A DNA stretch of 64,000 bases from Podarcis bocagei. Taxonomy: Eukaryota. How positions within the stretch are numbered: the stretch's first letter is position 1; each line of letters begins with the position of its first letter. The position numbers and the translations under genes are program-made. Of this stretch, positions 2,261 through 31,495 are shown one piece after another. The notes under the pieces are model-generated. The model did not search any database. It worked only from the letters and a program-made list of their open reading frames with translations, and was not told where the DNA came from. The stretch is taken from the NCBI GenBank assembly GCA_964188305.1, contig OZ076889.1. One strand, written 5' to 3'.

Positions 2261-4039
2261 GATCAGCTGGCAGGGGTGTGCGTTTGAAGACTAGAAAGAA
2301 CTAGGAAGCACAAATCATGAAGTCAGGATATAGGCGAGTTGTCCCAGATATTAAAGAGGGAGTAGGGGAAAAGCAAACCCACTTGTTACGGTATATGCAG
2401 GGGTCACATATTTAATGAGCAGTTCTACCCTAAAACGTGGCGTAACTATAGAATGGTTAGTACATCTTATCAAATGCTCATCACAGTACCTGCACTGTTA
2501 ATTACAATAAAAACAGCACTACATCTTATTATTTGTATGTTGTAAACATTTTTATACGTACACAGTTGTAATTCTATCAGTGTTTATTGTTTTCAATAAT
2601 TGTTTATATACTTTGAGATTGTTTTTATCTGTAAGCTGCCTTGAGTCCCATAAGGGAAATAAATATATAATATATATAAATATATAAATAAATATATATA
2701 TAATAAGAGTAGTGCTATCGTGACATGTAGTGGCAAGCACCTAATCATTATTGGCATTTATACATGTAGTGCTTTTTGAGTGTACAAAGGAGTTTTATAT
2801 ATATCCTCACAGTAATTCTCACAACAATCCTACAAAGTAGACAAGTGTCTTTACACCCCCGTGTCACAGAACAAAGGCTGAGGAAAGGTTGGCTTGAATA
2901 TTGACACACATTGACGGAGCTGAGATTTGATTTTCTGGTTCACAGCTCATCTTCTGATGACACATTACTAATTAGAACAAATGGCCATGGCACATATATG
3001 AAGGCATCTCAGATCTGCTTTCGCACCTAGCTGTTCTTGCTGTTCTCTCTTAACTTTGTCATGATCCAAAAGCACTTTTCAGACTATCAACACTGCAGAG
3101 ATGGGGAGAACTGGGATCAGGGTAAGTTTCAGTGAGGCTTTGCAGCAACTAAAGATACATATGCTATTAGTCTCACTGTTAATAATGGGTCCTGAGCAAT
3201 CACTCCCTCAAACACTAAGCTTCCTGTTTGTAAAATAAAAGAACTAAGTCCCATGTTTATTTCTTGGAAGGACAGGTAAATAATCTTGGAATTGCTATTA
3301 AGCTGTATGGTTTAATCCCACCCTTTTTGGGTGCACGAAGGCTGAACACCAGACTGAAAACTGGTGTCTTGCTGCCATGAAATGTATCTTACTCAGTCTA
3401 GATGATTCCTTGACAAAATTTTAGGTTTAGTCACTTTAATTATCACTCACTAGCAACACTACCACCTCTGTACAGTCTCATTAGGTCTTCAAGGATAGCA
3501 TAGGCTGAACTGAAAAAACTGCTGAGGACTGTGTTGTAAAATATACACCTCGTAGGAGTCTCCAGTGATGAGCTAACCGGAAGCCCTTTAAAGATAAAGC
3601 TCAAGCAATGTGTCACAATAAACACCTAAACGGAACTGCTGCGGAATCTATTAGGATAGATGCATCCCTTTGATACAGCTCCATCCAGAACTGAAACTGC
3701 TTTCCTTTTTCCAAAGCTCTGTTAAAAACCAACACATCCCTAATTAAGACACGTAACATCCGAGGATGGTTACGAAGTTCACGGGTAGAGAAAAGATCGG
3801 TCTTTCTTTTTTCATTTTGCTTGCACGGTATATAGGTTCACATGTGTACTGAGTGCCGAACGCTCTGGTTTCCGATAGAACACAAACAAAAGTCACTCCG
3901 AATATGAACCACGTGTGTTGTTTCTGGGTAAAACCGAAACGTAAAGAAAACCTTTCCCCTCCTCCCCCCCCCAAAAAAAAGGTTCAGAACGAGAAGCGCC
4001 TTTTTAAAACTTGAGAAGAAGAGGCGCTCCAATCCGTTT

Positions 4040-4930
4040 CGCACAACGCAGGAATCGGGTCCAGTTTCTCCCTTTCGTCCCCCACCCCTTTTTTTTTTTT
4101 TTTTTAAAAAAAAGGGTTCCATGAAAGCTTGCATTTCCTTGAAATAAAAAGGAGAGTGTCGGGGGAGCAGCGCACAAATAATAACAATAAAAAGAAGCGA
4201 AACCCCGAAGCTTGTCCCTGCCCCTTCAGGGAAAGTGCGAGACAGGCGCGAAGCGGCGGGGGGAGAAAGAAGGGGAAAACCCCAGTAAGGAAGAAGAGGC
4301 GGCGGCAGAGTCTCCCGCGACATGAGCTGCCCGCCCACCGCTCCTCCCGGCCGCGTCTCGGGGCTTCCTTCCTCTCGCCCGCCGAGAGCAGGCCCAGGCG
4401 GGGGCGGACCCCTCGGCGCCACCAGGCAGGCCTCACGCCGCCCCAAAATGGCTGCTTCCCCCTCAGCCGCCGCATCCCGCCACGGAGAAGGCCTCCATGC
4501 CCCTTCACGGGGTGCCGCCGCCGCCTTTCCTTCCCCCACCCACAGGTAACCCTCTCCCCACCGGCGCCGCCATTTTACTCACCGACCGAGCTCGCCGCCG
4601 CCGCCTCCTCCTCCGCCGGGCCTTCAACGCCAGGCCCCGTCACCTGCTCCGCCCCCTCCTCCCTGCACCGCTCTCGCTCCCGCTCCCCCCCCCCACACCC
4701 CCGCCGCCGGCCTCTCGCAGGCCGCACCTCTCGCGAGAGCTCCGCCAAATCGCCTCCGCCAATCGCCTCCGAAAGGTCGCGTGGATCATAGAGACGAGGG
4801 AGAGGGGGGATCGGCACTGAGGGGAAAGAGGGAGAGACGGTCTATAGAGAATGGGCGTCCTAGAACGGCCTAAAAATCGTAGCGTTTGAAGGCGCTGCAA
4901 GGGAATCTTTGGCCCGGCGTGGGATTCGAA
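4040..4930 (-). promoter_or_regulatory. GID8 CpG-island promoter
   Basis: Very GC- and CpG-rich; TCTCGCGAGA palindrome at 4729-4738; YY1-type AAAATGGC motifs at 4568-4576 (minus) and about 4445-4452 (plus). Confidence 0.88.
4583..4720 (-). other. GID8: GID8 non-coding exon 1 (5' end approximate)
   Basis: Strong minus-strand donor TCG|GTGAGT at 4582-4577 inside the CpG island; TSS position inferred only. Confidence 0.7.
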
Positions 4931-4972
4931 CCCACGACCCCGTGATTGAGAGCCCCATGCGCTACCGGCTGA
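4895..4972 (-). pseudogene. tRNA-Lys(CTT)-derived sequence, probably the truncated head of a lacertid tRNA-Lys/CR1 SINE
   Basis: Minus strand reads TCAGCCGGTAGCGCATGGGGCTCTCAATCACGGGGTCGTGGGTTCGAATCCCACGCCGGGCC then AAAGATTCCCTTGCAG; intact T arm, no 5' acceptor strand, mismatched anticodon stem. Confidence 0.75.
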
Positions 4973-5154
4973 TGCTGTTAAGTTCTAATTTTTAAAAAAA
5001 TAATAATTCTCAAGCGACATACAAAAAGGAAACGATAAAGCTGTTTAGTAAAAACAGTAAAGCAGCATTATAGAACCTGATGACTACAGGTGCAGGTAAT
5101 TCATTCTGATGGAAGTGGTAAAGCCTGGGTGAAAAGACGTCCTTCTTGTGGGAA

Positions 5155-5950: not shown

Positions 5951-6558
5951 AATTAAGAGGTGATTATATCAGTAAAATATCAGAGCCATTTACTACTATT
6001 ACACAAAAAACATTTTTTTAAAGTTACAATCAGAAATCAGCTATTATGGAGAGAGGTATTCTTCTTTGCCTTATTTTTTATTTATAAAATAGTTATACGT
6101 GTACCATTGAGCAAATGATCTGCTACTCAGATAGCCCACTCATCAGCATCCATTGTTAATGGTCAAGCTACACTAAAAGCTTATGGGAGGATTTAGCTAA
6201 TCATGTGTTCCATTTTTGTCCCTATAATGATTTTGCATTTTTGTCCCTATAATAATTATGCTATTTTAAACTGGTGCAACACTTTAAAGATAAAATAGTA
6301 AAAATGTAGTTTGCTTCCTTTTGTCAAGTTACTTTTTGTGCAAGCATATGAAAGGTAACTTTTCAGTTGCGTTATCTACATACTCTTTAGTTTCCAGGTA
6401 TAGGTCTGGTAGAAGTAAAAGGTTAAGAAGGTTAATTGTAAAAGGATTTCAACTGTTTCCCATGTAGCTGCTTTTGACATATATAAAAACAACACATTTA
6501 CAAACCTCCCTATACAGGGCTGCCTTCAGATGTCTTCTAAAGGTTGTAGAGTTTATCA

Positions 6559-6999: not shown

Positions 7000-8110
7000 A
7001 ACGTTGCGCCACTTCCTCCTCCCGCCCAGAGGGGGCGCTCGACGCCCTTCCTTGCCGCTCTGCACTGCTCTCCCCACCAGAAAGACCCTCTAAGTTTCCG
7101 CTCTCTCTGTGGTTCCTTCCCCGCCCGGATTACCTCTGGGCGCCTTCCCAACTGCCACTGCGTGCGACGGAGCAGAGCGTCCTCCGCTCCCCCCCCCCGC
7201 AGCCCAACGCGCACCGCCTCGCGCGCAGCCACCTCGGGCGGCCATTTTGGCGACGAGTTCCTCTCAGCCTCGGCGCGGGCGGAGCAACAAGTCTGAAGGG
7301 AGCCGTGAGGGAAGGAGAGAAGGAGGCGGAGGGAATGGAAATGGCGGACGCCGCCGCCGCTCGTCTCGGCTGAGGCCCAGGGAGGGAGAGAGGCGCCGGC
7401 ACCGAGGCGGGAACACGCTCGCTTTCTCCCCCACCCCGTGTCTTTTTGCCCCCCCTATTTTTCTTCGAGCCCCCTTTTTCCCTCCTCTACGGTGAGTGAG
7501 GGGCAGCCGCTTCGGGCCTGGCTGGAAAATGGAGGAGGAGGAAGGCGGCGGGCAGCGCGGGCGGTGGGTGGGGGGGCGGCGGGAGGAGCGACCTCGCCCC
7601 TATCTCGCCCTTTCTCCCCCAACGGGGGGGGGGGGTTAGGTCGGGATCAGGGCCTTTAAAACCGTCGCTCGTGCAAACCCCGCGGTGTGAGACCACAATC
7701 GGGTGACGTCGGAGGGCTTCGTGACGCCCCCGGTAAAAGGCACCCCCCGACACTTGAACGTGGGAGGCTGTTGTTGTTTTGGGGGGGGTGGAGGCGAGGG
7801 AGGGGCGCCCGAGAAATAGCTCCTCGCCTGACGTGTGATAACGTGGTCACCAAAGAGAGGGAGAGAAAAACGGAGGAAGGGCGAGTTTGCGGTGCCCCCC
7901 CCTTTAATTACAGGCCTTCCGGGCAATTGTTTCAGAATCCGCTTGGCGTGTTAGCAGTACTGTAGTAAGTAGACTCCGGCCCCCGCCGCTCTAAACCCTG
8001 CAATTCGTGGTTTGTGGGAGGGGGCATCATCTCTCCCTCCTCTTTATTGTCTAACAGGAAGAGTGACCTTATTTGAGCTTGCCGGCCTGTTTTTCGGTGG
8101 CGAGCCTGAC
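7000..8110 (+). promoter_or_regulatory. DIDO1 CpG-island promoter
   Basis: CpG-rich; YY1-type GGCCATTTTG near 7240 and AATGGCGG near 7340; CRE-like TGACG sites near 7704, 7722 and 7828. Confidence 0.85.
7200..7491 (+). other. DIDO1: DIDO1 non-coding exon 1 (5' end approximate)
   Basis: Strong donor ACG|GTGAGT at 7492-7497 in the CpG island. Confidence 0.65.
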
Positions 8111-9138: not shown

Positions 9139-10739
9139 GATTGAAGAGCCTAAACTTCTGTTCCATGCAATCCTATAAGTTCCATTGAACTATTGTATCA
9201 TAGTCATGTATAGGATTGTGCTATAAAAGAGCAACTGTTTGCATGCAGTGTTTGAAATTAGCCAGGCGTGTTTTGCGACTAGTGTGGGTCCAATTGTGAC
9301 CACGCAGAGATCTCTGGATGCCAGGTTATTCCTGGGGGAAAGCAAAATGTCACTTCGAGAAGGATCAGAAATATTTTCCTTGAAACTTGATTTGTTTTAT
9401 TCTGGATTGTTTTATTTGATGTTTTAATGGGTTGTAAACCACTTTGAGATTTGTTTTTTTAAAATATAAAGTGTTATAGAAATGAGATTAATTATAACAA
9501 CCACCACCCCCATCGGGTGCAGGGGGTGGCGCCTAAACAATCCATTGTGGTGACTACAACCTTGGTTTAAGGTGCAATTTGACAATTAGCTTATATATCT
9601 GAGTTTCTAACATTGTGTGCTTACTCAGGAGTAAGCCTCATTGTGTTCAGTGTCTTCCTTTCCCCAATAATATGTATTTTGGATTACAGTCTAGTGCTTA
9701 CAATAAAGTGTGTGAGAACTGGAAGAACTGGCAGTTTTCCAGCAGTAGATAGGTAGATAACTCAGTTGTAGGATACAGTTTTTACATTCTAAAGTCAAGT
9801 GACTTTAGAATCCTTATATGTTACCTTTTTAACTTCTGAAGCTGATTTTACTATACTTCGTAATACTAAACTGTGTGTAGTCTGCTGTGGTAATGGAATG
9901 GAAAAGCTTTAATTTAATTTTTCTTTCCCTATTTTGGTGCTCACTGGTTTTTAAGGACAGTAAAAGTCTAAATTTTACTTCTTTAAACATCCCAATAAGA
10001 TGACCCACCTTGAATTTGGAAATGTGTGGAATTCAGTTCAGGTCATTAATTCATATTGACAGAACTCCTATTCTGAGAAGTTCAATTTTGCTTGTGTGTA
10101 ATTTCTTTTGTACTTTACGGTTCCTTCTGGAGCAGAAGGTACATTTCCATCTTGCTGTCCTTGGCATCATATGATAACCCTACCATGGTGACATACTAGG
10201 TCATTATGAATTTCATAACAATGCAGGTTTCACTCCTTTTAGTATTGTTTCTGTGGTAAAGTAAATGGTAAATGCCTTTGAAGGGGTTTATTTTGCTCAA
10301 TGCCCAGCAGTAGGTATAAGATACCAACTTTTGTTCATGTATAGTTTGACAGTTTACCATTCTGTCTGCTAGTGCTTCATTGTTGCTTCTCCTTAGATAT
10401 ATCCTATACTGTACTGTAGTAATTTCTCTCCCTTCTTGCAATTTCTGGGTAGCAAATAAAATCATTTTATCTTCTGTACTACTATTAGTACACTTCTGAT
10501 GTTGCATAAATGTATAATAGTATTACTTAACTTTGTATATTGATATGATTACTCAAGATGGCTTTGGGTCCTGGTCTCAGATTGTGCTCAGGGTTGCAAT
10601 TCAGCAGAAGTGAAGAGAAAAATGTTCTATGTAGAGGTTGTTAGGCTACATCTGTTTTCTCAGACATTCTCAGGCGGTTAATTCTTAGTACAGCCTCTGG
10701 ATATCTTTTTGTATATTTTAGCTGTATTGTTTTATTGTA

Positions 10740-11908: not shown

Positions 11909-12508
11909 CCGTATTTTTCGCCCCATAGGACACATCGGCCCATAGGACGCGCCTAGTTTTTTGGGGGGGAAATAAAGGGGAAAAAATTATTCCCCCCCAG
12001 GTGCGCTGCGCTAAGCCTGAAGCTTGGGGCGTGCTGAGCTCAGCGCGCCCCAAGCTTCTGGGTGCCGGCAAGGTCTCCGCTAGCCGTGGGAGAGCCACGC
12101 GACTTCGTGCGGCTCTCCCACAGCTAGCGGAGCACTGCGCTAATCCCGAAGCTTGGGGCGTGCGGAGCTCAGTGCGCCCCAAGCTTCTGGGTGCCGGCAA
12201 GGTCTCCGCTAGCTGTGGGAGAACCGCGTGGCTCTCCCACGGCAAGCGGAGCACTGCGCTAATCCCAAAGCTTGGGGCGTGCGGAGCTCAGCGCACCCCA
12301 AGTTTCTGGGTGCAGGTAAGCTCTCCGCTAGCCCTGGGAGAGCTGGGTCTCCCACAGCTAGCGGATAGCTTCCTGAAGCCTGGAGAGCGAGAGGGGTCGG
12401 TTCGCACCAACCCCCCTCGCTCTCCAGGCTTCAGCGAAAGGGATGCACACACATTTCCCCTTCATTTTTGGAGGGGAAAAAGTGCGTCTTATAGGGCGAA
12501 AAATACGG
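11909..12508. mobile_element. Tc1/mariner (pogo/Tigger-like) non-autonomous element with an internal tandem array
   Basis: TIR CCGTATTTTTCGCCC / GGGCGAAAAATACGG, TA TSD; about three GC-rich 120-130 bp units at 12006-12370. Confidence 0.85.
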
Positions 12509-14291
12509 TACATTAGTCAACTTCTCATTGCTTGCTCTCCAGAAAACTTTCCTCGGCCAAAAGAATTGTCCTCTGTCCTGATTTTGGTAGAGCAGACATC
12601 GCTATCATTTAGTTGACCTTCTCACAGTTCACCACATATCATTCTGCGCCATCCCTCTTTGTTGTAAATACGGGAAAATTATAAATTATGTGTTCTTTTC
12701 TCTCCAGTTCACAGTATTATACTCCACATTTCTTGGCACATGGTGCTACTGATTAAAGGGACTAGTGGTGGAAGAAGCAGATGCTATGGCAAGAAAGATC
12801 GCAATTGCTGGGTTAACTCCATTGCTCTTCTAAGAAACTTAGATTTTTTGATCTGAAAATGGTTTAGTAATTTGTTTAGCTTGTGGTAGCGTTGTTGCAG
12901 GCCACACTCAGACCCCAAAGTGTTCACTCTGGAAAGGCCCATGTTCGACAGATTTATGGCACTCAAAATTCATGTCTTGTTTGAATTTATGCTGTTTTGC
13001 CTATTGTTATCTCTGGATGTCTGCATGGTTCTCCATGATCAGTGTGTTTACTTGTAAATACAGAGGTATTACAAAGATACCATATGTCTCCAGTGTTCAC
13101 TCTTATTGTTAGGAAGCAAACCTTGAGCTTTCTACCACTTGAGAATAGTACTAGTTCAAGGAATTTTGCTTCCTGAAGCAGAGGCCAAGTAGGGCCCTCC
13201 TGCAAGCTGTTTGGGCCAGCACTTTGAAAAAGACCACCACTCAGGAATTGGTACTGTGTGAAGCAGGCTGCTTCATTCTGTTGTGCCCTGCTTGAGAAAG
13301 TGGAGCAAGCAAGCTCCCCTTGTTATAATGGTACGATTGACTAGAGAATGACCTGGGATAAAGTGAAATATAGTGAAAATATTTTGTAACTTAGAAGCAG
13401 AAAATAATTTGAGGTATTTTATATGAGATATCTAGTGTATTGTTCTTTTGGTGAGGCTGTACAGCATGCATGATAGAGGCATATACAGTAAGTCATATCT
13501 CAAATAAGTCTGGTGCAGAATGGTGCCTTGGCAGTAGTTTTTTTCTGAGAAGTCAAAGTTCAGTGACATTTTAGGAAGGAAATAAGTATTATTCAGTTTT
13601 GTAACAGAATGTAAAGGGCTTATCAGGTGATTACAGAAAGAAACACCATCACCTTAATCATTGAAACCAGAGAGACTTTATGGGCTTTGTGCTTTTCTCA
13701 GCACAACTAAACTAGAACCCCAGACATGAGAGAGTTTACTTTAAGTAAATTTGATTCAGTGACCCTTGCTTAGTTTTAGTGTTTAAGCACTCACTAAGAG
13801 ATTTAAGTTGGGGCTGGAGCAATTGGAGGTAGAATTATGTTGGAGGAAAGTAATAAAATCACAGGAGAGTTGAAGGTTTGAATTAATAGTACAACCATAC
13901 TATCAAGTCTGAAACAGCTTGGGAGACAGAGGATAAGATGAGGGAGGTATCACTGAAAACCTCCTTCCTCTCTGTTCTGCTGAGAGATTTTTTTGGTCAG
14001 TGGATGGTTTCCGTTGAATACAACCCAAAGTGCTAGATTTGTTTAGGCTTCTGTTAACTTATTGGGCCTCGTGCTGGTAGAACCCATCCTGCAACCTTAG
14101 GGTGAAGGGTGGGTAATTAATAACAACACTTGTGGGATGAAGCAGCAAATAATTATTTCTCAAAATCCACATCACATTTCTGCATACACCACAAAAGCAA
14201 TAGAGATGGAAGAACAAAAGGAGGAATAAGATACGTGTAAAGAATGCACACTGTTCTCATCAATAGGCTAAGCATTTCCACAAATTATAGT

Positions 14292-20855: not shown

Positions 20856-21580
20856 ACTTGGTCAGTCCCATTCACTTGACTATCCAATGCAATCACCAAT
20901 CATGTAACAGCACTTATATTCACTCTAATGACACCTTTGTGCCTGCGTCCACCCAATTCAAACCCAAGATCCCCCTCCCCTCATTGTGTGTATATATATG
21001 CTTGCAAAATCGGTAAACCTTTTGAAAGCTGTTTACCTTACCTTTTGAAAGCTGCTTATAAATAGGCCTGTTCCCTGCAGCATTTTTTGTATGCTTCCCT
21101 TGCTCTCTTGGTTTGGGGGAGTTTGAGAAAAGGGGCCTCTGTTAAGTCTTGTGGGAGTCATCCACATGTGGTAGCTGACCCTGCTCAGCCAGCTTATTGT
21201 GTTTAACATACAATATTATCCCCTTGCTCCAGGGTAGAGTAAAATTGCAATGTATTCTCCAATGCAGTGGAGGATTTCCAGCAGAAGGAAGTGAGCAAAT
21301 TGTATGCCAACTGCTCTTTATGCTAAAGTAATGTCTAATTACTTTCCCCCCAAATTAAACACATTAGGGGTTTAGTGTATAATATGCGTTCTTTGCATAG
21401 TGGCCAATTATTCTGTCATCTAACTGATGGGATATGACTTTTAGTATTATTAAAGTATAAGCTGATGATTAGGCTTTTAGTTTTGCTTTAGAATTAAAGA
21501 GATACTTTTATAAAAAAAATTGAACAAGAAATGATTAGCCAACTTTTCCCCTCTTCCTTCTGGCAGATCTTTAAAATTGC

Positions 21581-21748
21581 ATGATGTGTGATGAGTTGGA
21601 GCTTCTTAACAGGGAGATTGGGAGGTTATTACAAAGCAGCAACGTGGAAGGAAGCTCCTTAAACTCAGAATCTCTTCAGCCGTCAAGCTCTGATTCCTGG
21701 GATGTAGCCACTGCTTCAAGCAGTGAAACACAAGGCAGTTTAGTAAAG
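21581..21748 (+). CDS. DIDO1: Predicted first coding exon of an N-terminally extended DIDO1 (exon starts at 21567)
   Basis: Long pyrimidine tract plus CAG at 21566; in-frame TAA at 21572 before ATG 21581; MMCDELELLNREIGRLLQ...GSLVK; donor AAG|GTATC; 168 nt, phase 0. Confidence 0.72.
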
Positions 21749-21975
21749 GTATCAAATACCTTATTGTTGTTACAGGGCTCCCATGATAACTTGTCCTATC
21801 ATAGTAGACTTTATTTGCATAGTATTTAGAAAGCCATCTAGGATATATGTTGGCACACATTATCTGTAAGTGGTGTTGAATTATAATGTTGCTTAAAGGT
21901 TGATACAATTCAAGGAGGAATACTTATGCCCTGTTTATTTGAGAAAGAAACATTTCAAAAGTCTATGCTAACATA

Positions 21976-22047
21976 GACTTGGCGTGCCTGGCGTGCTCTG
22001 GTCCATGGGGTCACGAAGAGTCGGAAACAACTAAACAAAACAAAAAA
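21976..22047 (+). mobile_element. Extremely 5'-truncated Bov-B/RTE LINE 3' end
   Basis: GCCTGGCGTGCTCTGGTCCATGGGGTCACGAAGAGTCGGA plus CAA-rich tail; 11-bp TSD ATGCTAACATA. Confidence 0.8.
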
Positions 22048-22939
22048 ATGCTAACATAATTTCCCCTGAGGTAACCAAATAATAAGCCCTATCTTAAAAT
22101 GCAGTTTTAGGGAAGAATTATCCTTTTGCGTATGGCATAATATCTGAGAACATAAATAAATTGAGAGAATAAAATTGCATTTGATTTTTCTGTAGCATTT
22201 TTTGTAGTTGTTAGAGCCTAGCTTTGTCTGAAGATGGCACTTACAACAGTTTGGGCCATATTTAATTTAACCCCCCCAGTCTCTTTTTTTGTTTTCTGCA
22301 CTGAACAAATGGTATTGACACAGTATTTAAAGTGCTGTCCCTTTAAATGAGATGGGGTAGAATCTTCAAGCTTTTGATTTCTGGTGGTTGGGATTTGTCA
22401 GTTGGGCAAATCCCTGTGTGGGTTAGAGATGGAGAGAGCGAGATCTGGCAGCAAAAGCTCTAGAAAGAAAAACTCAAAAGTAAGCAATTGAAACAAGGGG
22501 ATGTTTTAATACTGAAGATCTGTTCAAAAACCTTAACATGTAACTTGTTCTTCAAATCATCCCTTAAACAGGAATACCCATATTTTATAGTAGGATGAAG
22601 AATTTTCTTTTGCAAGTATTCGTTCTATGACTTCACAATAATTTGAAGCTATAAATTACCTTAGTACTCTTTGATTTATAAAAATACCTGTGCCCAATTC
22701 CATTCCTGTAAAACACTGATAGAGGCAAAACTTTGAAAGTTGTGGTCGAGTGTAGCATTCACAAATGGTTAATGCTTAATAGGTTTCATCCTGTATGTAA
22801 TGTAATGAAATTATCCCCTTTAAAAATACGTTGGTGTAAGTTCTAATAATTTAGTTAATGTGAGCAGGATCTCTTATTTCAAATGGGTAAGAAGTGATAA
22901 TGCAAGTGAACAACGATCTAAATACATTTTTTGTAACAG

Positions 22940-23138
22940 GCAGCCAAACCAAGCGCAGCATTCCTGGTTTCGGAGTCAACAGGATGGCATCAAGATGAAC
23001 TTTGTGCTTCTGACTTCCCCAGAACAGCCTGCACTGTAGGGCTTATGCTGAGTGACTTGCTTCTGCCCTCCAGTGATTCTTCCTTTGGTTTAAGTCAAGA
23101 GGGAGAAAAAATACTGGCATCCTCTAATGCTATGTCAG
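22940..23138 (+). CDS. DIDO1: Predicted DIDO1 N-terminal extension exon 2
   Basis: TTTTTTGTAACAG acceptor, CAG|GTAAAA donor; 199 nt open in phase 0 (AAKPSAAFLVSESTGWHQDELC...KILASSNAMS), exits in phase 1. Confidence 0.72.
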
Positions 23139-23314
23139 GTAAAAGCATTTAGAGGATATTGGAGCCTATTCTATTTCATTTGCTTTTTCTGGAAATTGGG
23201 ATCCACCTTCTTATTTCATAACCTTTCTTTACTATCCAAAGTAAACATATATTAAGATCTTAATTATATACTGTGTTCTGTTGTATTGCAGTCTCTTCAG
23301 AATTCTATTGTACT

Positions 23315-23691
23315 TTATTTTTCTGTGTATAGGACAATGTTGTTTGCTAAAAAAAAAAATAGTCAAAAATTAAGGGGCGTCTTATACATGGATGGTGAAT
23401 GCACAGGAATTAAACTGTCCCTTCCAGGTGCCTGGCTTGGGCAATCCCCCAAAAAAGCTCAACTTTGGGCGATCTTGGGTGTTGGTGGGGCACGCCTCGC
23501 TGCTGCCCACACGCCCCCCCCCGCTGCCCCAGGCACCAGTGGGGGTTGCTACGCTGTTGCCAGTGCTTTGAGTGTTTAATAAAATGTCGAAGTTGTTCCG
23601 TTTGATGTTTAAAATGTTGATTTCTTAATTTTGGGTTCAAAAAAATAGGAGTAATCTTATACATGGGGGCATCTTATACACGGGAAAATAC
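23315..23691. mobile_element. Degenerate pogo/Tigger-like non-autonomous element
   Basis: TTTTTCTGTGTATAGGAC ... CTTATACACGGGAAAATAC ends, related to 60244-60409. Confidence 0.6.
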
Positions 23692-24587
23692 AATAATTAT
23701 GAAAGCAAGTCCTAGCTGTGTCCACATTGCTGTGTGACATTGTGTCATATAACATGTTTGTGGAGTTTTGCGGCTCAAAGCTGGGGACTTTGTTGATAAT
23801 TATGCAGGGGACAGTTGTCTGAAGAAATTCAGTTCTGAAAAGATGGAAGTCCAACTTGAGTAGGCTTGCTGTAAGCAGAATAAATTATGGAAATAGTGTT
23901 ATGGCACACCCAGTACGAAGATTGTGTAGGGCTGTTACTCATTTCCCTGCTATTCCATAGGACAAAAGGCAGATTTTTCCAATATATTGTGAACGAGTCT
24001 TGCCTAGATTCAGTATCTCAGGAAGTCCTTTAATGGAATGTGCTGTCTCTCTAATACTGTATGGGGTGACTGGTGAAAATTGTCAGGGTCCCAGTGGGCA
24101 TGGAAAATGTAGGAAGGCAGACTTACAGACCAGTTTGTGATGTACGGAACATGCTTCCTATTCAGGCACCATTCTTGGATTATGAGCAGTCGCTGGAGTG
24201 CCGCTGGTGTGTATAGTGCCGCTGGTGTGTATGGTAACAGTTTCTCTATTCAGAGTAGCATAACTGAGGTTATAGGTAAAAGGGAGACCGGAAAGCTATA
24301 TGGTTGGTGTCTGTGTCCAGGCAATGTGCACTAAGTCAGAATCTCTGGCGTGGGCAGGGGAGCAACTGGAAGTACCTTGTATTATGCTGCAGCACACCAG
24401 AGTACTGCTCGGTTGTTTCTGGCAGACAGCGATTGTGGAGTTGGGAAGAAGGCAAGTGTGGGAACATGTTTGAGCAAGTGCATGCTTTAATTGTCTAACC
24501 TGTTCCCTTCAAGCTATATTTAATGTAACAGGCAACATACTTTGGATTCCACACATGCTAAAATAAACACAATGGTGCATTCATAGG

Positions 24588-24715
24588 GTAGGAAGCTGCC
24601 TTATACAGATCAGGCTGTTGGCCCATCTAGCTTGGCATTGTCGATAGTGACTGGTAGGAGCTGTCCACAGTTTCAGACAGAAGCATTTCCCAGCTCTACC
24701 TTGAAGATTGACCCT
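24588..24715 (-). mobile_element. Squam3-like SINE 3' part
   Basis: TAGGAAGCTGCCTTATAC...GGCCCATCTAGCTTGGCATTGTC. Confidence 0.6.
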
Positions 24716-25174
24716 TTAGACAATATGTGTGCTGTATTCAAAATACGCTGTATCTGTAGGACCGTTACAAAGTTCTGCTTTTTTAAGAGTCATCAGCTGT
24801 CTAAACCCCTTCAGGACTCTTTCCAGGTCTCATCCCTCATTGGCCCTGCTTCACACCCAGGGTGTTTCTGTCTAGTTGCGATGTGTCCTTGAATGCTGAT
24901 GAAGTCTCTAGCTGCTTGCCTGGATGGATAATAGAGGGTGTGTGTATGTGTCTATAGAAAGTAGTCTACTCCAAAAACAAACCTACATTAGTTGCTGTAC
25001 CCATTTTTGTCTCTGTCCCCACCTGTGATCCTCAGAAGGGAATGTCGCTTCAGGCTGAAAAAGGTGCCCCATCCCAATCTAAATATTTTAATGAAATAGC
25101 TAATTTGCTTTTCCATGTTTATCAGATTGAAAGTAAATCAGTGTTAAAAACCTTTTGTGTTTTTTCTTTTTCAG

Positions 25175-25273
25175 GGGTGACATATGGGAGTAGTGTTATC
25201 ACTGGTGTGAAAGAAGAGAATCTGGAATCTCTGGCACTGGATTCTGAATCTAATATGGAAACCCGTTCTCTTG
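25175..25273 (+). CDS. DIDO1: Predicted DIDO1 N-terminal extension exon 3
   Basis: Strong TTTTTTCTTTTTCAG acceptor, TTG|GTAAAT donor; 99 nt, phase 1/1; GVTYGSSVITGVKEENLESLALDSESNMETRSL. Confidence 0.75.
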
Positions 25274-25614
25274 GTAAATTATTTTGTTTTGGAAAGTGTC
25301 TAACCTGAGTAAAGCTTCTAATTGTAATTACTTCCATTTCTGATTATTAGGCTGTGAGTACTATTGCTTATATAGCCAAAACTGTACCACCCATTCACAA
25401 GAGATATATATTGGAAGGTTTGGTGGTGACCTCAAGGTTTGCAGAAGTACAAAAGTATTTTTTAAAACAAAATAAGTAGCAGGAAACAGCCCAGTGAGGA
25501 TTGAGCATGTGCACTGGTCACAGAATGCTGATTGGTGGGGAAAGGCAAATGAAGTAGCTGGAACCTCAAACACCTGACACTGAAACCTTTTGTTAAAGGT
25601 ACCAGTTGCCTATA

Positions 25615-25830
25615 CAGTGGTACCTTGGTTCTCAAGTTTAATCCGTTCTGGGAGTCGGTTTGACTCCCAAAACCGTTCAAAAACCAAAGTGCAGCTTCTG
25701 ATTGGTCACAGGAGCTTCCTGCACTCAAGCGGAAGCCGTGTTGGATGTTAGGCTTCCGAAAAATGGGTTTGCAGTGTTTGAAAGCCAATTTGTTCGGGAG
25801 GCAAGCCATTCGAGTACCAAGGTACCACTG
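25615..25830. mobile_element. Tc1/mariner-type MITE
   Basis: TIR CAGTGGTACCTTGGT / ACCAAGGTACCACTG, TA TSD. Confidence 0.87.
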
Positions 25831-25911
25831 TAATAATACTGATCATAGTCTGCATTGATTTGCAATGGAAGTTAATAGTTTTAATAGTTATTGGTCTCTG
25901 ACTCAACTCTT

Positions 25912-27131
25912 AAGAATAAGAATAATTTATTTATACCCCGCCCATCTGGCTGGGTTTCCCCAGCCACTCTGGGCGGCTTCCAACAGAGTATTAAAATACA
26001 ATAGTCTATTAAACATTAAAAGCTTCCCTAAACAGGGCTGCCTTCAGATGTCTTCTAAAAGTCTGGTAGTTGTTTTTCTCTTTGACATCTGGTGAGAGGG
26101 CGTTCCACAGAGTGGGTGCCACTACTGAGAAGGCCCTCTGCTTGGTTCCCTGTAACTTGGCTTCTCACAGCGAGGGAACCACCAGAAGGCCCTTGGTGCT
26201 GGTCCTCAGGGTCCAAGCAGAGTGATGGGGGTGGAGATGCTCCTTCAGGTATACTGGACCGAGGCCGTTTAGGGCTTTAAAGGTCAGCACCAACATTTTG
26301 AATTGTGCTCGGAAATGTACTGGGAGCCAGTGTAGGTCTTTCAAGACCGGTGTTATGTGGTCTCAGCGGCCGCTCCCAGTCACCAGTGTAGCTGCTGCAT
26401 TCTGGATTAGTTGTAGTTTTCGGGTCACCTTCAAAGGTAGCCCCACATAGAGCGCATTGCAGTAGTCCAAGCAAGAGATAACTAGAGCATGCACCACTTT
26501 GGCGAGACAGTCCGCGGGCAGGTAGGGTCTCAGCTTGAGTACCAGATGGAGCTGATAAACATCTGCCCTGAACACAGAATTGACCTGTGCCTCCATGGAC
26601 AGCTGTGAGTCCAGAATGACTCCCAGGCTGCGCACCTGGTCTTTCCCCATTCAGTTACCCCATTAAGGACCAGGGAGTCCTCCACACCTGCCCACCTCCT
26701 GTCCCCCCAAAAACAGTACTTCTCTCTTGTCAGGATTCAACCTCAATCTGTTAGCCACCATCCATCTTCCAGCCGCCTCCAGACACTCACACAGGACCTT
26801 CACCGCCTTCACTGGTTCTGATTTGAAAGAGAGGTAGAGCTGGGTATCATCTGCATAATGATGAACACCCAGCCCAAACCCCCTGATGATCTCTCCCAGT
26901 GGCTGCATGTAGATGTTGAAAAGCAAGGGGGAGAGGACAGAACCCTGAGGCACCCCACATGAGAGCCCAGGGGTCTGAACCTCATCCCCCCGACTTTCTG
27001 AACATGGCCTGGGAGGAAGGAGCGGAACCACTGTATAACACTGCCCCCAGCTCCCAGCCCACTAGACGGTCCAGAAGGATGTTATGGTCGATGGTGTCAA
27101 GAGCCGCTGAGAGATCCAGCAGAACTAGGAA
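25912..27131 (-). mobile_element. 5'-truncated L2-clade LINE with frameshifted reverse transcriptase
   Basis: Minus-strand ORF pieces [55 protein letters not shown]; short-repeat 3' tail near 25912-25930. Confidence 0.9.
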
Positions 27132-27303
27132 ACATATATATAAATAGATGTAAACTGCTTTGATATTTTTATGATAATAGCGGTATATAGATATTTTTAA
27201 AAATAAATAAGTAAAACTTTTCAGTTACTCGACTCTCATTTACTGCTACAGAACATAAATAATTGTATCTCTTGTATTCAGGGAATGTCCTATTCGTTAT
27301 AGG

Positions 27304-27421
27304 TCAGCATTCCCCAACCTGATGTATTCCAATGTGTTGGGCTACAATTTTCATCATACTATCCAGGGTTGATGAGAGTTATAACCTAAAGCATTTGTAG
27401 GTTACCAGGTTGGGGAAGATG
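27304..27421. mobile_element. Degenerate hAT MITE
   Basis: CAGCATTCCCCAACCTG / CAGGTTGGGGAAGATG imperfect TIR. Confidence 0.55.
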
Positions 27422-27668
27422 GATCCAAGCCAATAGACAAATGGCTAGTTGTACTTGTGAATTCATAACCCTGAGCAGACTTTTATATAATAGGCTGAGT
27501 AATATGTTGTCCATTCATCTTGATCATAGTCTCCACCTACCCATTGCCAGGATAGGTAGCTGCTATATTGGTGAGCTGACAGTCATTTGTTGATTAAGCC
27601 TAAAAGGAAAGAGGCGCGGAAAAACAAGGTGTAATGGACAGATAAACTTAACACTATGCCCTGTTTCT

Positions 27669-27911
27669 TTTTTTTCTTTTCAAAAGATATTTATTAAAGT
27701 TTTTAAGATATAACAATGAAAATGAAAAATAAAAAAAAACAAAATACAACATAAAAACAGTTAAAAAAACAAATAATTTTCCATAACGTATCTTCCTTAC
27801 GCTTATTTCCCCAGACCTCCTCATACCTCCCTTCTTTGTATTCCACTTCAATTTGTTAGTTCAGCATATCCTTACCATTCAGCTTTTACCCATTTGTAAA
27901 CCTTTTTTTCG
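27669..27911 (-). mobile_element. Poly(A)-tailed retroposon 3' fragment (L1/Tx1-type integration)
   Basis: T-tract at the left end; 17-bp TSD CACTATGCCCTGTTTCT at 27652-27668 and 27912-27928. Confidence 0.8.
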
Positions 27912-28107
27912 CACTATGCCCTGTTTCTACTATAACCTTGCACTCTGTTTAGTTGGAATTTCATGAGGAAGTATGTTTTTGCTCAAAAGTTCAAAAATGA
28001 AACATACACAAGAAGAAGTGTAAAACATGTTACTGTTTATGGGAAGGCAATTTTAAAATCCATGTTTAAAATATGCAATTCTTTGTATCATTTCTCTTCA
28101 ACATCAG

Positions 28108-28981
28108 CTTTGGATGACAAAAGTGAGCAAAGCAATGACGATGAACAAAAAACAATTAAACCCACAAGTAAGGAGTTCAAGAAAACTTGGGGGTTTCGGA
28201 GAACTACAATTGCAAAGCGTGAAGGTTTAGGGGATGCTGAAATGGACATCACCGAACAGTCATCTCCACAGCAGCAAAGTCTGGCTCTTAGGCGTAGTGG
28301 GCGACAGCCCAAACGCACTGAACGGGTAGAAGAATTTCTTACAACTGTAAGGCGCAGAGGAAGAAAGAATCTTCCCACAGCTCTTGAGGACTTGAGCGAG
28401 CCAGCATCCTGCCATGTAACTGACATTGAAACTGCTTCTGAAGGCAGTGTAGAAAGCATGTCAGATGTAAAAGCCATGTCTCAGAAGTGTCACTCCAAGG
28501 ACATTAAGGGCCAGCCAGCTGGGAAAGGGAGAGCCACTAAAGAACATGACTATGAGGAAAGGGAGGATGATTCATCTGACAGTGATAGTGATGGCTTAAC
28601 ACTGAAAGAGCTACAGAACCGTCTAAGAAAGAAATGTGTCGAGCAGAAACCTACAGAACTAACTCTGAAAGAGTTACAGAATCGCCTCAGGAAAAAACAT
28701 CAAGAACAAAATCCTACAGAGACAGTTGATGTTCAAGCAGGCAACCAAATTAAGACCGAAATAGCTGTAAAGCAAGAACCAGAAAGTATAGGCAATACCA
28801 AGGCTGGAGATCAAGGAACAGTTCCCAAAGAAATGAGTGAAGCAGTTCAGGTTAAGAAAGAAGGAAGATCTCCTGCGCATACTGGGGATGAACCTGAAGA
28901 ATCCAAAAAGAGGAAATCAGAGTCTGAAGTTTATGATCCTAGTACTCTGTACTGTATCTGTCAGCAGCCTCACAACAACAG
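28108..28981 (+). CDS. DIDO1: DIDO1 exon equivalent to the mammalian first coding exon (NLS region, start of PHD finger)
   Basis: (A)LDDK...IKPTSKEFKKTWGFRRTTIAKREG...LRRSGRQPKRTERVEEFL...YDPSTLYCICQQPHNN(R); CAG at 28107, donor AG|GTATT. Confidence 0.95.
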
Positions 28982-29178
28982 GTATTACCTACTTATTTAT
29001 TTCATGAAATTTATACACCGCTTGATTGTAAAAAAAACAACCCCTCAAAGTGGTTTAAAAAAGATAAATGAGGAAAATCAAGAAAAATTCACGCCCATAC
29101 TTTATAATATACAGAAGTTAAAATAGTTTTTCACAAACTCCCCTGCACCCCGCCACCAAATAGTTTCTAAAATAGCTA

Positions 29179-30035: not shown

Positions 30036-30369
30036 TTGTTCCTGAGTAGTCTGTAGGAATGCAAAGGTGACAAAGAAAGACAATTGTATATGGGTTTAGC
30101 AAAGCAGTGGGAGTCATGTAGGGGTGAAGGCAGTGTTAAATTGCAGCATTTACTGAGACATTTGGGCGTTTAATTATGTAAAGAAAAGAGTTAAATGGGA
30201 TAACGAATAAGCTTTTGTCTGATTTCATATAGATGTGGGATCTTTTTTATTTACTGTTGTGGTGGTGATATAACAAATTTTATTGGCTGTATTTGATTGT
30301 AATCAGATTTTGTAAAACTGAAGTATTTCACATTAATGATATATTTTTGCCAACCCTTTCCTTTTTTAG

Positions 30370-30688
30370 GTTTATGATTTGTTGTGATAGATGTGAGGAA
30401 TGGTTTCATGGAAACTGCGTAGGGATTTCAGAGGCTCGTGGGCGACTCTTGGAAAGGAATGGGGAGGACTATATCTGCCCAAATTGCACCATTCTGCAGG
30501 TGCATGATGAGACAGTTATGGATGCAGACCAACAACAAACCATGTTGGGACAGGTAACAGGTGATGGCACAGAGCTTACAAGCATAGGAACTGTTGAGCA
30601 AAAGTCCATTGAAGACCAAGGAATCAAGGGACGGATTGAAAAGGCTGCAAATCCCAGTGGAAAGAAAAAGCTCAAAATATTTCAACCA
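30370..30688 (+). CDS. DIDO1: DIDO1 exon (PHD finger)
   Basis: FMICCDRCEEWFHGNCVGISEARGRLLERNGEDYICPNC...KKKLKIFQP; canonical AG and GTGAGT. Confidence 0.96.
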
Positions 30689-31495
30689 GTGAGTATTTAA
30701 TTTGTAGTGACATGAGGCTAAGTGTGTTTCTAGTGCAACTGTTCTGGTTCAGAACTGAAGTGAAAGAAAAAGTCACCCTAGGTATAATTAAATTTTGTAT
30801 TTTTTGTATGTTAGTTATGGTATTAAGCAAATACACTACTTAGATATAGGTAATTCATTATACTTAGTGAATCAGAATACTAATATATTTTAGAAGAGGA
30901 AATGGGGAAGTATTGCTCATTCTTAGCTACTTTGGTTGCATCTGCATGCTTTTCTGTCATTCTGTCTTAGTTCTTCCTTGCTATAGGGCTATAACTGGAT
31001 GTTTGTTTGTTTAAATGTTACCAAGTTTCTTAGACATTACATTAACAAAATGCTTTCTCCTTTCTCTCTATTTCCTACCCCCTAAGTATCTCCTTCCACA
31101 ATTGTCCTATTTATCCTGTATACAAAGAAGGAAAAGGTGGGGTGAGGGAACAACATATTCGTATGGAATAGTTATAGCACACACACCCTGCTGCATGAAT
31201 ATCAATTTAAGATATGGAAGAGCTATCCATAACCATAATTTCTTTTTGTCTTGTGCTTCAGTTATTTTAAAAATAGGGAACAGATTATTATGAAAGCCTC
31301 TGCTCATTTCTGAATCTCAGAAGTTGCTAATTGCTTCCTAGGTTTCTGTATATCAGGAATAGGAAGTCTTTGACCCTGCAAATGTTAGTCTGCAATTCCC
31401 ATCATCCCTAACTATTGGCTATTTTGGCTAGGTTTGATGGAAGTTGGAGTCCAAGAATATTTGGAGGATCAAGCTCCATGCCTATCAAGGCTATA

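Follow-up and report, generated by a model that had tools for sequence, protein, structure and literature searches.

Where does the DIDO1 protein begin in an animal whose gene has no methionine codon at the mammalian start position? The question is raised by a stretch of 64,000 nucleotides (nt) of Podarcis bocagei DNA (assembly GCA_964188305.1, contig OZ076889.1), hereafter the window, in which three exons open in the DIDO1 frame lie upstream of the exon where mammalian translation starts. We consider it likely that DIDO1 has two N-termini generated by alternative splicing, that this arrangement is sauropsid-wide, and that mammals start at a new ATG of the next exon. An examination of the letters without database searches, referred to below as the sequence-only reading, had interpreted the locus as a DIDO1 gene that lost the mammalian start codon and gained the upstream exons.

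A word search with the exon at 28108 returned 68 homologues with E-values down to 1e-136, and since these include entries named death-inducer obliterator 1, the gene is DIDO1. Within the overall scheme of two N-termini, the window with good probability contains the 5′ half of a squamate DIDO1 gene. The exon carries the conserved basic motifs KPTSKEFxKTWGFRRTTIAKREG and RRSGRQPKRTERVEEFL and ends in YCICxQPHNNR, with near-invariant columns across the homologues. Mammalian DIDO1 is the same gene, in which the exon encoding KPTSKEF(K/R)KTWGFRRTTIAKREG...YCICxQPHNNR is followed by a PHD finger, whereas it starts with MDDK/MDEK at an ATG where the window has TTG, and its upstream exons are non-coding. 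The exons of the gene recognized in the window are as follows (a slash marks the exon edge):

7257..7491, plus strand: non-coding DIDO1 exon 1, 5′ limit unmapped, at least 235 nt in a transcript contig; donor ACG/gtgagt; GC-rich, in a CpG island
21567..21748, plus strand: first coding exon of the long form; 168 coding nt, 56 residues; helix MCDELELLNREIGRLLQSS followed by a Ser-rich tail
22940..23138, plus strand: second coding exon of the long form; 199 nt (66 codons and one further base), phase 0 to 1; acceptor gtaacag/GCA, donor CAG/gtaaaa
25175..25273, plus strand: third coding exon; 99 nt, phase 1 to 1; acceptor ttttcag/GGG, donor TTG/gtaaat
28108..28981, plus strand: DIDO1 exon with the mammalian start-codon position; acceptor acatcag/CT TTG GAT GAC AAA, read (A)LDDK; ends ...CQQPHNN AG/gt (ag/gtattacc)
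30368..30691 (approximate, inside the open reading frame 30293-30700), plus strand: PHD-finger exon of DIDO1; Pfam PF00628, E-value 3.6e-10

The PHD-finger exon is 91% identical to residues 415-522 of a Naja naja protein (P0075) described below. According to the proposed scheme, the long form would be spliced from exon 1 through the exons at 21567, 22940 and 25175 into the exon at 28108, with translation from ATG 21584 (or 21581) adding about 155 residues, namely an amphipathic helix and then an acidic, serine-rich and probably disordered stretch. In the short form, exon 1 (ending at 7491) would be joined straight to 25175 and translation would begin at ATG 25255. Mammals, in turn, would begin translation in the next exon, at whose head a new ATG, differing from TTG by a single base, would have arisen.

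Exon structure and conservation of the extension

All searches reported here were performed with single exons or with database proteins. The first coding exon has a strong acceptor, tcccctcttccttctggcag (...ttctggcag/ATC), and the donor AAG/gtatca. An in-frame TAA at 21572-74 is followed by two consecutive ATG codons at 21581-86; the start conserved across species is the second of them, at 21584, and the context of ATG 21581 is weak. The second coding exon holds a conserved motif, MLxDxxLLPSSxS. The three exons chain in phases 0, 1 and 1 into the DIDO1 frame through the split codons G+GG (Gly) and G+CT (Ala), giving 156 residues in total, of which, counted exon by exon, 21% are serine, with 23 acidic vs 8 basic residues. 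The description given by the sequence-only reading (three stop-free upstream exons with canonical splice sites, phases 0/1/1, 156 residues and a TAA just before ATG 21581) was thus verified in the sequence, as was its statement that the exon at 28108 reads (G)CT TTG GAT GAC AAA, with no ATG at that place. Among random intronic pieces of the window, 5% of those with 168 nt, 3.3% of those with 199 nt and 16% of those with 99 nt are open in a given frame, so that a chain of three open exons, each with good splice sites, is unlikely to occur by chance.

The same exons are present in other species, and two automated gene models already contain them. The Naja naja protein KAG8131623.1 (hypothetical protein E2320_009539; P0075, 654 residues) starts with MSDELEILNREIERLLQSS and leads on to the DIDO1 exon and the PHD finger. 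Its identity to the window is 75% for the first coding exon and, at residues 56-123 of the protein, 60% for the second; the protein differs in joining the second exon directly to the DIDO1 exon, whereby the 99-nt exon is skipped and the frame is kept, and in having Val/Ala at the mammalian Met position vs Leu in the window. The entry is unnamed and nowhere discussed. The Gekko kuhli protein KAL8179638.1 (hypothetical protein K2H54_070104, partial; P0004, 400 residues) starts with MCDELERLNREIERLLQSS, is 82% identical over the first coding exon and has ...ESNMENTSL-ALDDR vs ...ESNMETRSL-ALDDK in the window; it differs by a shortened second exon and is flagged as UNVERIFIED_CONTAM and partial. 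The expectation of the sequence-only reading that automated annotations of other reptiles may hold the extension is therefore borne out by both models. The extension is present in public gene models and is not mentioned in the literature searched.

An exhaustive HMMER search with the Gekko extension recovered four real homologues, all of them sauropsid-like: three genomic fragments and the UniParc entry P0070, which has all three exons behind a GC-rich leader. A fifth match, P0073, was a false, low-complexity one and was rejected. A word search with region 1-135 of the Naja protein gave no match among candidates of 360-1144 residues, a range outside which full-length DIDO1 (>2,000 residues) falls. 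In the bird/turtle-like contig L002 (50 kb), the LDDK exon is preceded by all three exons, in order and in the same phases, and the lineage of L002 is sister to the squamates in an exon tree built on about 295 columns; P0020, which reads like the human exon, is in neither the alignment nor the tree. Because L002 holds all three exons, the extension dates back at least to the divergence of the squamates from the L002 clade.

The exon lengths vary between species in steps that keep the frame: 168, 168, 165 and 150 nt for the first coding exon, 199 and 178 nt for the second (178 in L002), and 99, 87, 81 and 105 nt for the third, with all differences being multiples of three. No stop was found in the three exons in any species examined. 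In the DIDO1 exon itself, one of the relatives that provided RNA (organism B) is without 3 nt at 28140 and keeps the frame, as expected of coding sequence.

The most conserved part of the extension is its beginning. An alignment of nine sequences shows the start Met followed by the helix xCDELEILNREIERLLQSS, with 12 invariant columns; in most species the helix sequence is MCDELEILNREIERLLQSS. The AlphaFold model computed with this alignment has a helix at residues 3-19, with 12 residues at a predicted local distance difference test (pLDDT) score of 90 or above, and the rest is disordered. The helix-like segment proposed at the head of the extension by the sequence-only reading thus reappears as a predicted helix, which may serve as a protein-binding or localization element. 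A Pfam search with the three exon peptides gave nothing meaningful, a PDB profile search with the helix alignment gave only a designed coiled coil (E-value 0.095), and an Rfam search over the whole window gave nothing.

About 60 nt on the 5′ side of the start ATG, including a pyrimidine tract, are also conserved across distant sauropsids (window 21521-21580, L001 about 9173-9235, L002 about 6303-6359).

Transcripts with and without the extension

RNA was placed on window positions 22600-28599 and consisted of contigs from two related organisms (X1 and X5) together with raw stranded RNA-seq reads (X23 and X24) from one of these organisms, all matching the window at 95-99%. The GT..AG junction 23138/25175 was found in an X1 contig and in two reads each of X23 and X24, and the GT..AG junction 25273/28108 in contigs of both X1 and X5, in six reads of X23 and in one of X24. 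Both of these junctions, which the sequence-only reading had proposed to look for, are therefore used in the relatives. Exon reads of X23 and X24 were almost all of the first-mate-on-minus type, as plus-strand RNA gives in most stranded libraries. One X1 contig joins the exons at 22940, 25175 and 28108 and represents an inclusion transcript. Another (record 2) starts exactly at 22940, which fits the use of this acceptor and is silent on the identity of the upstream exon. The joining of exon 21567-21748 to 22940 in P. bocagei we infer from its counterpart in other species, where the two appear joined in gene models and in P0070, an entry resembling complementary DNA.

The second type of transcript came from X5. 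Record 10 of its contigs (1,958 nt) contains the DIDO1 exon, the 99-nt exon and then 235 letters from outside 22600-28599, the last 30 of which match window 7461-7490 exactly. This loose end is located at the end of exon 1 (donor at 7491), so that the exons at 21567 and 22940 are absent from the transcript. In X5 the depth on 22940-23138 was zero, while in X23 and X24 the inclusion of exon 22940 was about 20-50%, judged from rough per-base depths, and in X1 its depth was about equal to that of the DIDO1 exon. Hence, both exons are optional in the relatives' RNA, in which both inclusion and skipping transcripts occur. The claim that this lineage makes DIDO1 with an extension stands insofar as the exons are real and conserved and two of their three junctions are seen in RNA; it does not stand as an obligatory feature, given that exon 1 can be joined straight to 25175.

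Three minor observations were made with the same RNA. X1 contigs cover the introns flanking the 199-nt exon (window 22603-23870) at about half the exon depth and do not cover the middle of the next intron, which suggests that introns next to this alternative exon are retained locally or spliced slowly. The relatives differ from the window within the 199-nt exon by 22973 G>A (Glu to Lys) and 23045 A>G (Met to Val), both non-synonymous. In the intron between the 99-nt exon and the DIDO1 exon, window 25800-27200 has a summed contig depth of thousands (X1) to tens of thousands (X5) vs about 50-130 on DIDO1 exons, with many loose ends and internal joints in the RNA contigs, and looks like a highly repeated, transcribed interspersed element.

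Predicted start of the short form

Where exon 1 is joined to 25175, a stop (TGA at 7371) interrupts the DIDO1 frame within exon 1, and no in-frame ATG follows it there. The first in-frame ATG is at 25255, in the context tctaatATGg (A at -3, G at +4), and its predicted product, METRSL-A-LDDK..., would have a mammalian-type N-terminus with seven additional residues. The 99-nt exon, being an internal coding exon in the long form, would thereby act as the carrier of the start codon. ATG 25255, located six codons before the exon end, is kept together with its A(-3)/G(+4) context in four genomes (the window, L002, L003 and L004), and it has a counterpart in the Gekko kuhli model and in P0070 as well. 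Two short upstream reading frames were noticed in this transcript: one in exon 1 (7335-7373), encoding MEMADAAAARLG before a stop, and one at the head of the 99-nt exon (25184-25210), encoding MGVVLSLV before a stop. They might temper translation from ATG 25255.

Are the extension exons coding or regulatory?

The ratio of non-synonymous to synonymous substitutions (dN/dS) was calculated on small samples of 28-57 codons. It was 0.84 in the first coding exon (window vs L008), 0.82 in the second (vs L002) and 1.1-1.2 in the third, compared to 0.10-0.20 in the DIDO1 exon. For the same pair of species, dS was 0.12 in the first exon vs 0.59 in the DIDO1 exon, and dN 0.105 vs 0.121. The ratios near 1 in the extension exons thus come from low synonymous divergence and not from a high dN. 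Such a combination of low synonymous change and raised dN/dS is generally reported for alternatively spliced coding exons, and in the extension exons it fits the skipping seen in RNA. The sequence-only reading had regarded frameshifts or stops in orthologous exons together with dN/dS near 1 as evidence against the extension; the ratio near 1 was indeed found, while the frames proved intact.

The same numbers can be read in another way. The exons at 21567 and 22940 might be alternative regulatory 5′-leader exons, acting, for example, on translation or transcript stability, with DIDO1 normally made from ATG 25255 and the long frame being tolerated and not used as protein. Such a role would go together with dN/dS near 1 at an unusually low synonymous change, with a run of 33 nt identical between the squamate L008 and L001, with the conservation of the 60 nt before the ATG, with the incomplete inclusion of exon 22940 in X23 and X24 and its absence from X5, and with the conservation of ATG 25255 in a strong context. 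We nevertheless regard it as unlikely. The length differences of all three exons are multiples of three in squamates and non-squamates alike, and the exons are free of stops in every species examined; nine sequences share the start ATG and, at the amino acid level, the 19-residue helix; and the reduced synonymous change is, as mentioned, a known property of alternatively spliced coding exons. Furthermore, the first ATG to follow the short upstream reading frame of exon 1 in the long transcript is 21581/21584, which is in frame with DIDO1, and since several ATGs lie between it and 25255, leaky scanning to 25255 is unlikely.

We favor two alternative N-termini of DIDO1, with both protein forms probably being made. 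Several points weigh against this conclusion. Apart from the dN/dS values, the acceptor CAG of the first coding exon is CAT in L001 and L002, with an invariant TTAG located 28 nt further upstream (window 21535-21538); the 5′ edge of this exon may thus differ in the L001/L002 clade. The RNA, having been obtained from relatives, does not provably represent the window's own individual, and the RNA-covered stretch includes neither the junction 21748/22940 nor the one by which exon 1 would be linked to 21567. The placement of the L loci depends on the exon tree, and the evidence for the long protein is at the level of sequence and RNA.

Origin of the mammalian start codon

The codon at the position of the mammalian ATG is TTG, GTG or GTT in every non-mammalian DNA checked. 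In L002, L003, L004 and L005, it is TTG, or GTG TTG, behind an acceptor site, with no ATG. The locus L006, grouping with Xenopus (support 99/100), reads ag/CT TCT GTT GAT GAC, and L007, grouping with fish (support 99/98), reads ag/CA TCC ACC GTG GAT GAA; both have Val at this position, and in both the coding sequence continues upstream. Mammalian fragments have an internal Met at the position, and the mammalian transcript L009 has ATG GAT GAT AAA with an in-frame stop upstream. As no non-mammalian DNA checked, including that of the amphibian and fish clades, has an ATG there, the mammalian ATG appears to be the derived state and, on the codons compared, would most simply be a mammalian novelty one base away from TTG. 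The loss of the mammalian start codon assumed by the sequence-only reading therefore runs in the wrong direction.

Several Logan fragments seem to begin with MDDK. Four entries (P0001, P0005, P0007 and P0009, corresponding to L003, L004, L005 and L002) had at first been candidates for reptiles keeping MDDK and its ATG; they were rejected, their DNA being TTG or GTG. Gene calling or translation with the bacterial code gives M for a first TTG or GTG codon, and the same happens in the translation of window 28110-29012. This has a practical consequence, since such an M would have falsely suggested that the mammalian start is kept in some reptiles.

The opposite polarity, in which the amniote ancestor started with MDDK and the sauropsids lost the ATG and recruited upstream leader exons as coding ones, is quite improbable in our view. 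In its favor, a change from ATG to TTG takes a single base, the matches to the extension all came from sauropsid-like sequences, and the only named models from an amphibian (Xenopus P0038 and P0039) have their start elsewhere and leave the question unsettled. Against it, L006 and L007 not only have Val at the position but also have the acceptor a few codons upstream, with the frame open across it, and the teleost fragments examined are without a clearly homologous Met, the alignment being ambiguous there. The restriction of the search hits to sauropsids is itself of small weight: the exhaustive search would not have been able to detect a 20-residue helix at 40% identity, and the missing amphibian and fish matches thus say little.

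Under the arrangement with two N-termini, the extension is probably an ancestral optional module, at least sauropsid-wide, and not a lineage-specific gain or the repair of a lost start codon; mammals would then have lost the module, rather than sauropsids having gained it. A further step can be proposed only tentatively and with somewhat less than even confidence: that DIDO1 originally had an amphipathic-helix module, possibly shared with PHF3, that sauropsids switch it by splicing, and that mammals discarded it when TTG changed to ATG. PHF3, the vertebrate paralogue of DIDO1, has considerably more than 100 residues before its counterpart of the basic motif RRTTIAKR, with a stretch resembling MLxDxDPxL; homology of this N-terminus to the extension is only a lead. 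The suggestion of the sequence-only reading that mammalian 5′ untranslated exons are decayed remnants of the extension found no support, though no refutation either, in the one transcript compared: the 243-nt leader of L009 gave only noise and no similarity to the exons of the window and L002 in blastn and tblastx.

DIDO1 has been studied almost only in mouse and human, and a review on the N-termini of DIDO and PHF3 gives the mammalian isoforms 1, 2 and 3 one common N-terminus, with no extension mentioned (PMC10111866). An extra, switchable N-terminal module encoded by reptile and bird-like genes offers a testable lead on a lost interaction or localization element. If mammals did discard it, the protein examined in every functional study of mammalian DIDO is one with a natural N-terminal truncation. 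The finding refines the annotation and the evolutionary history of the gene, rather than coming as a surprise.

The last explanation, in which conserved non-coding exons happen by chance to have open frames and the gene models containing them are annotation artefacts, might draw on the automated origin of the GenBank models (one of them flagged as UNVERIFIED_CONTAM and partial) and on their differing exon use (the 99-nt exon skipped in Naja, the second shortened in Gekko), but it is very improbable and already largely refuted, as openness at the low chance frequencies given above would have to recur in independent lineages, the insertions and deletions preserve the frame, and the splice junctions were observed in RNA.

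Other features of the window

Downstream of the PHD-finger exon, a Pfam search with four long plus-strand reading frames between 46959 and 56997, in which TFIIS-like and SPOC domains were sought, gave no match, smaller exons of this part being unmapped. Apart from the island at exon 1, two further CpG-island-like stretches occur at window 4001-5000 and 12001-12500, with a GC content of 0.59-0.65 and a CpG observed/expected ratio of 0.74-0.99. The long reading frames in them (3838-4539 on the minus strand; 4129-4791 and 12001-12516 on the plus strand) had no match in Pfam. These stretches could be the promoter of a neighboring gene or an alternative first exon.

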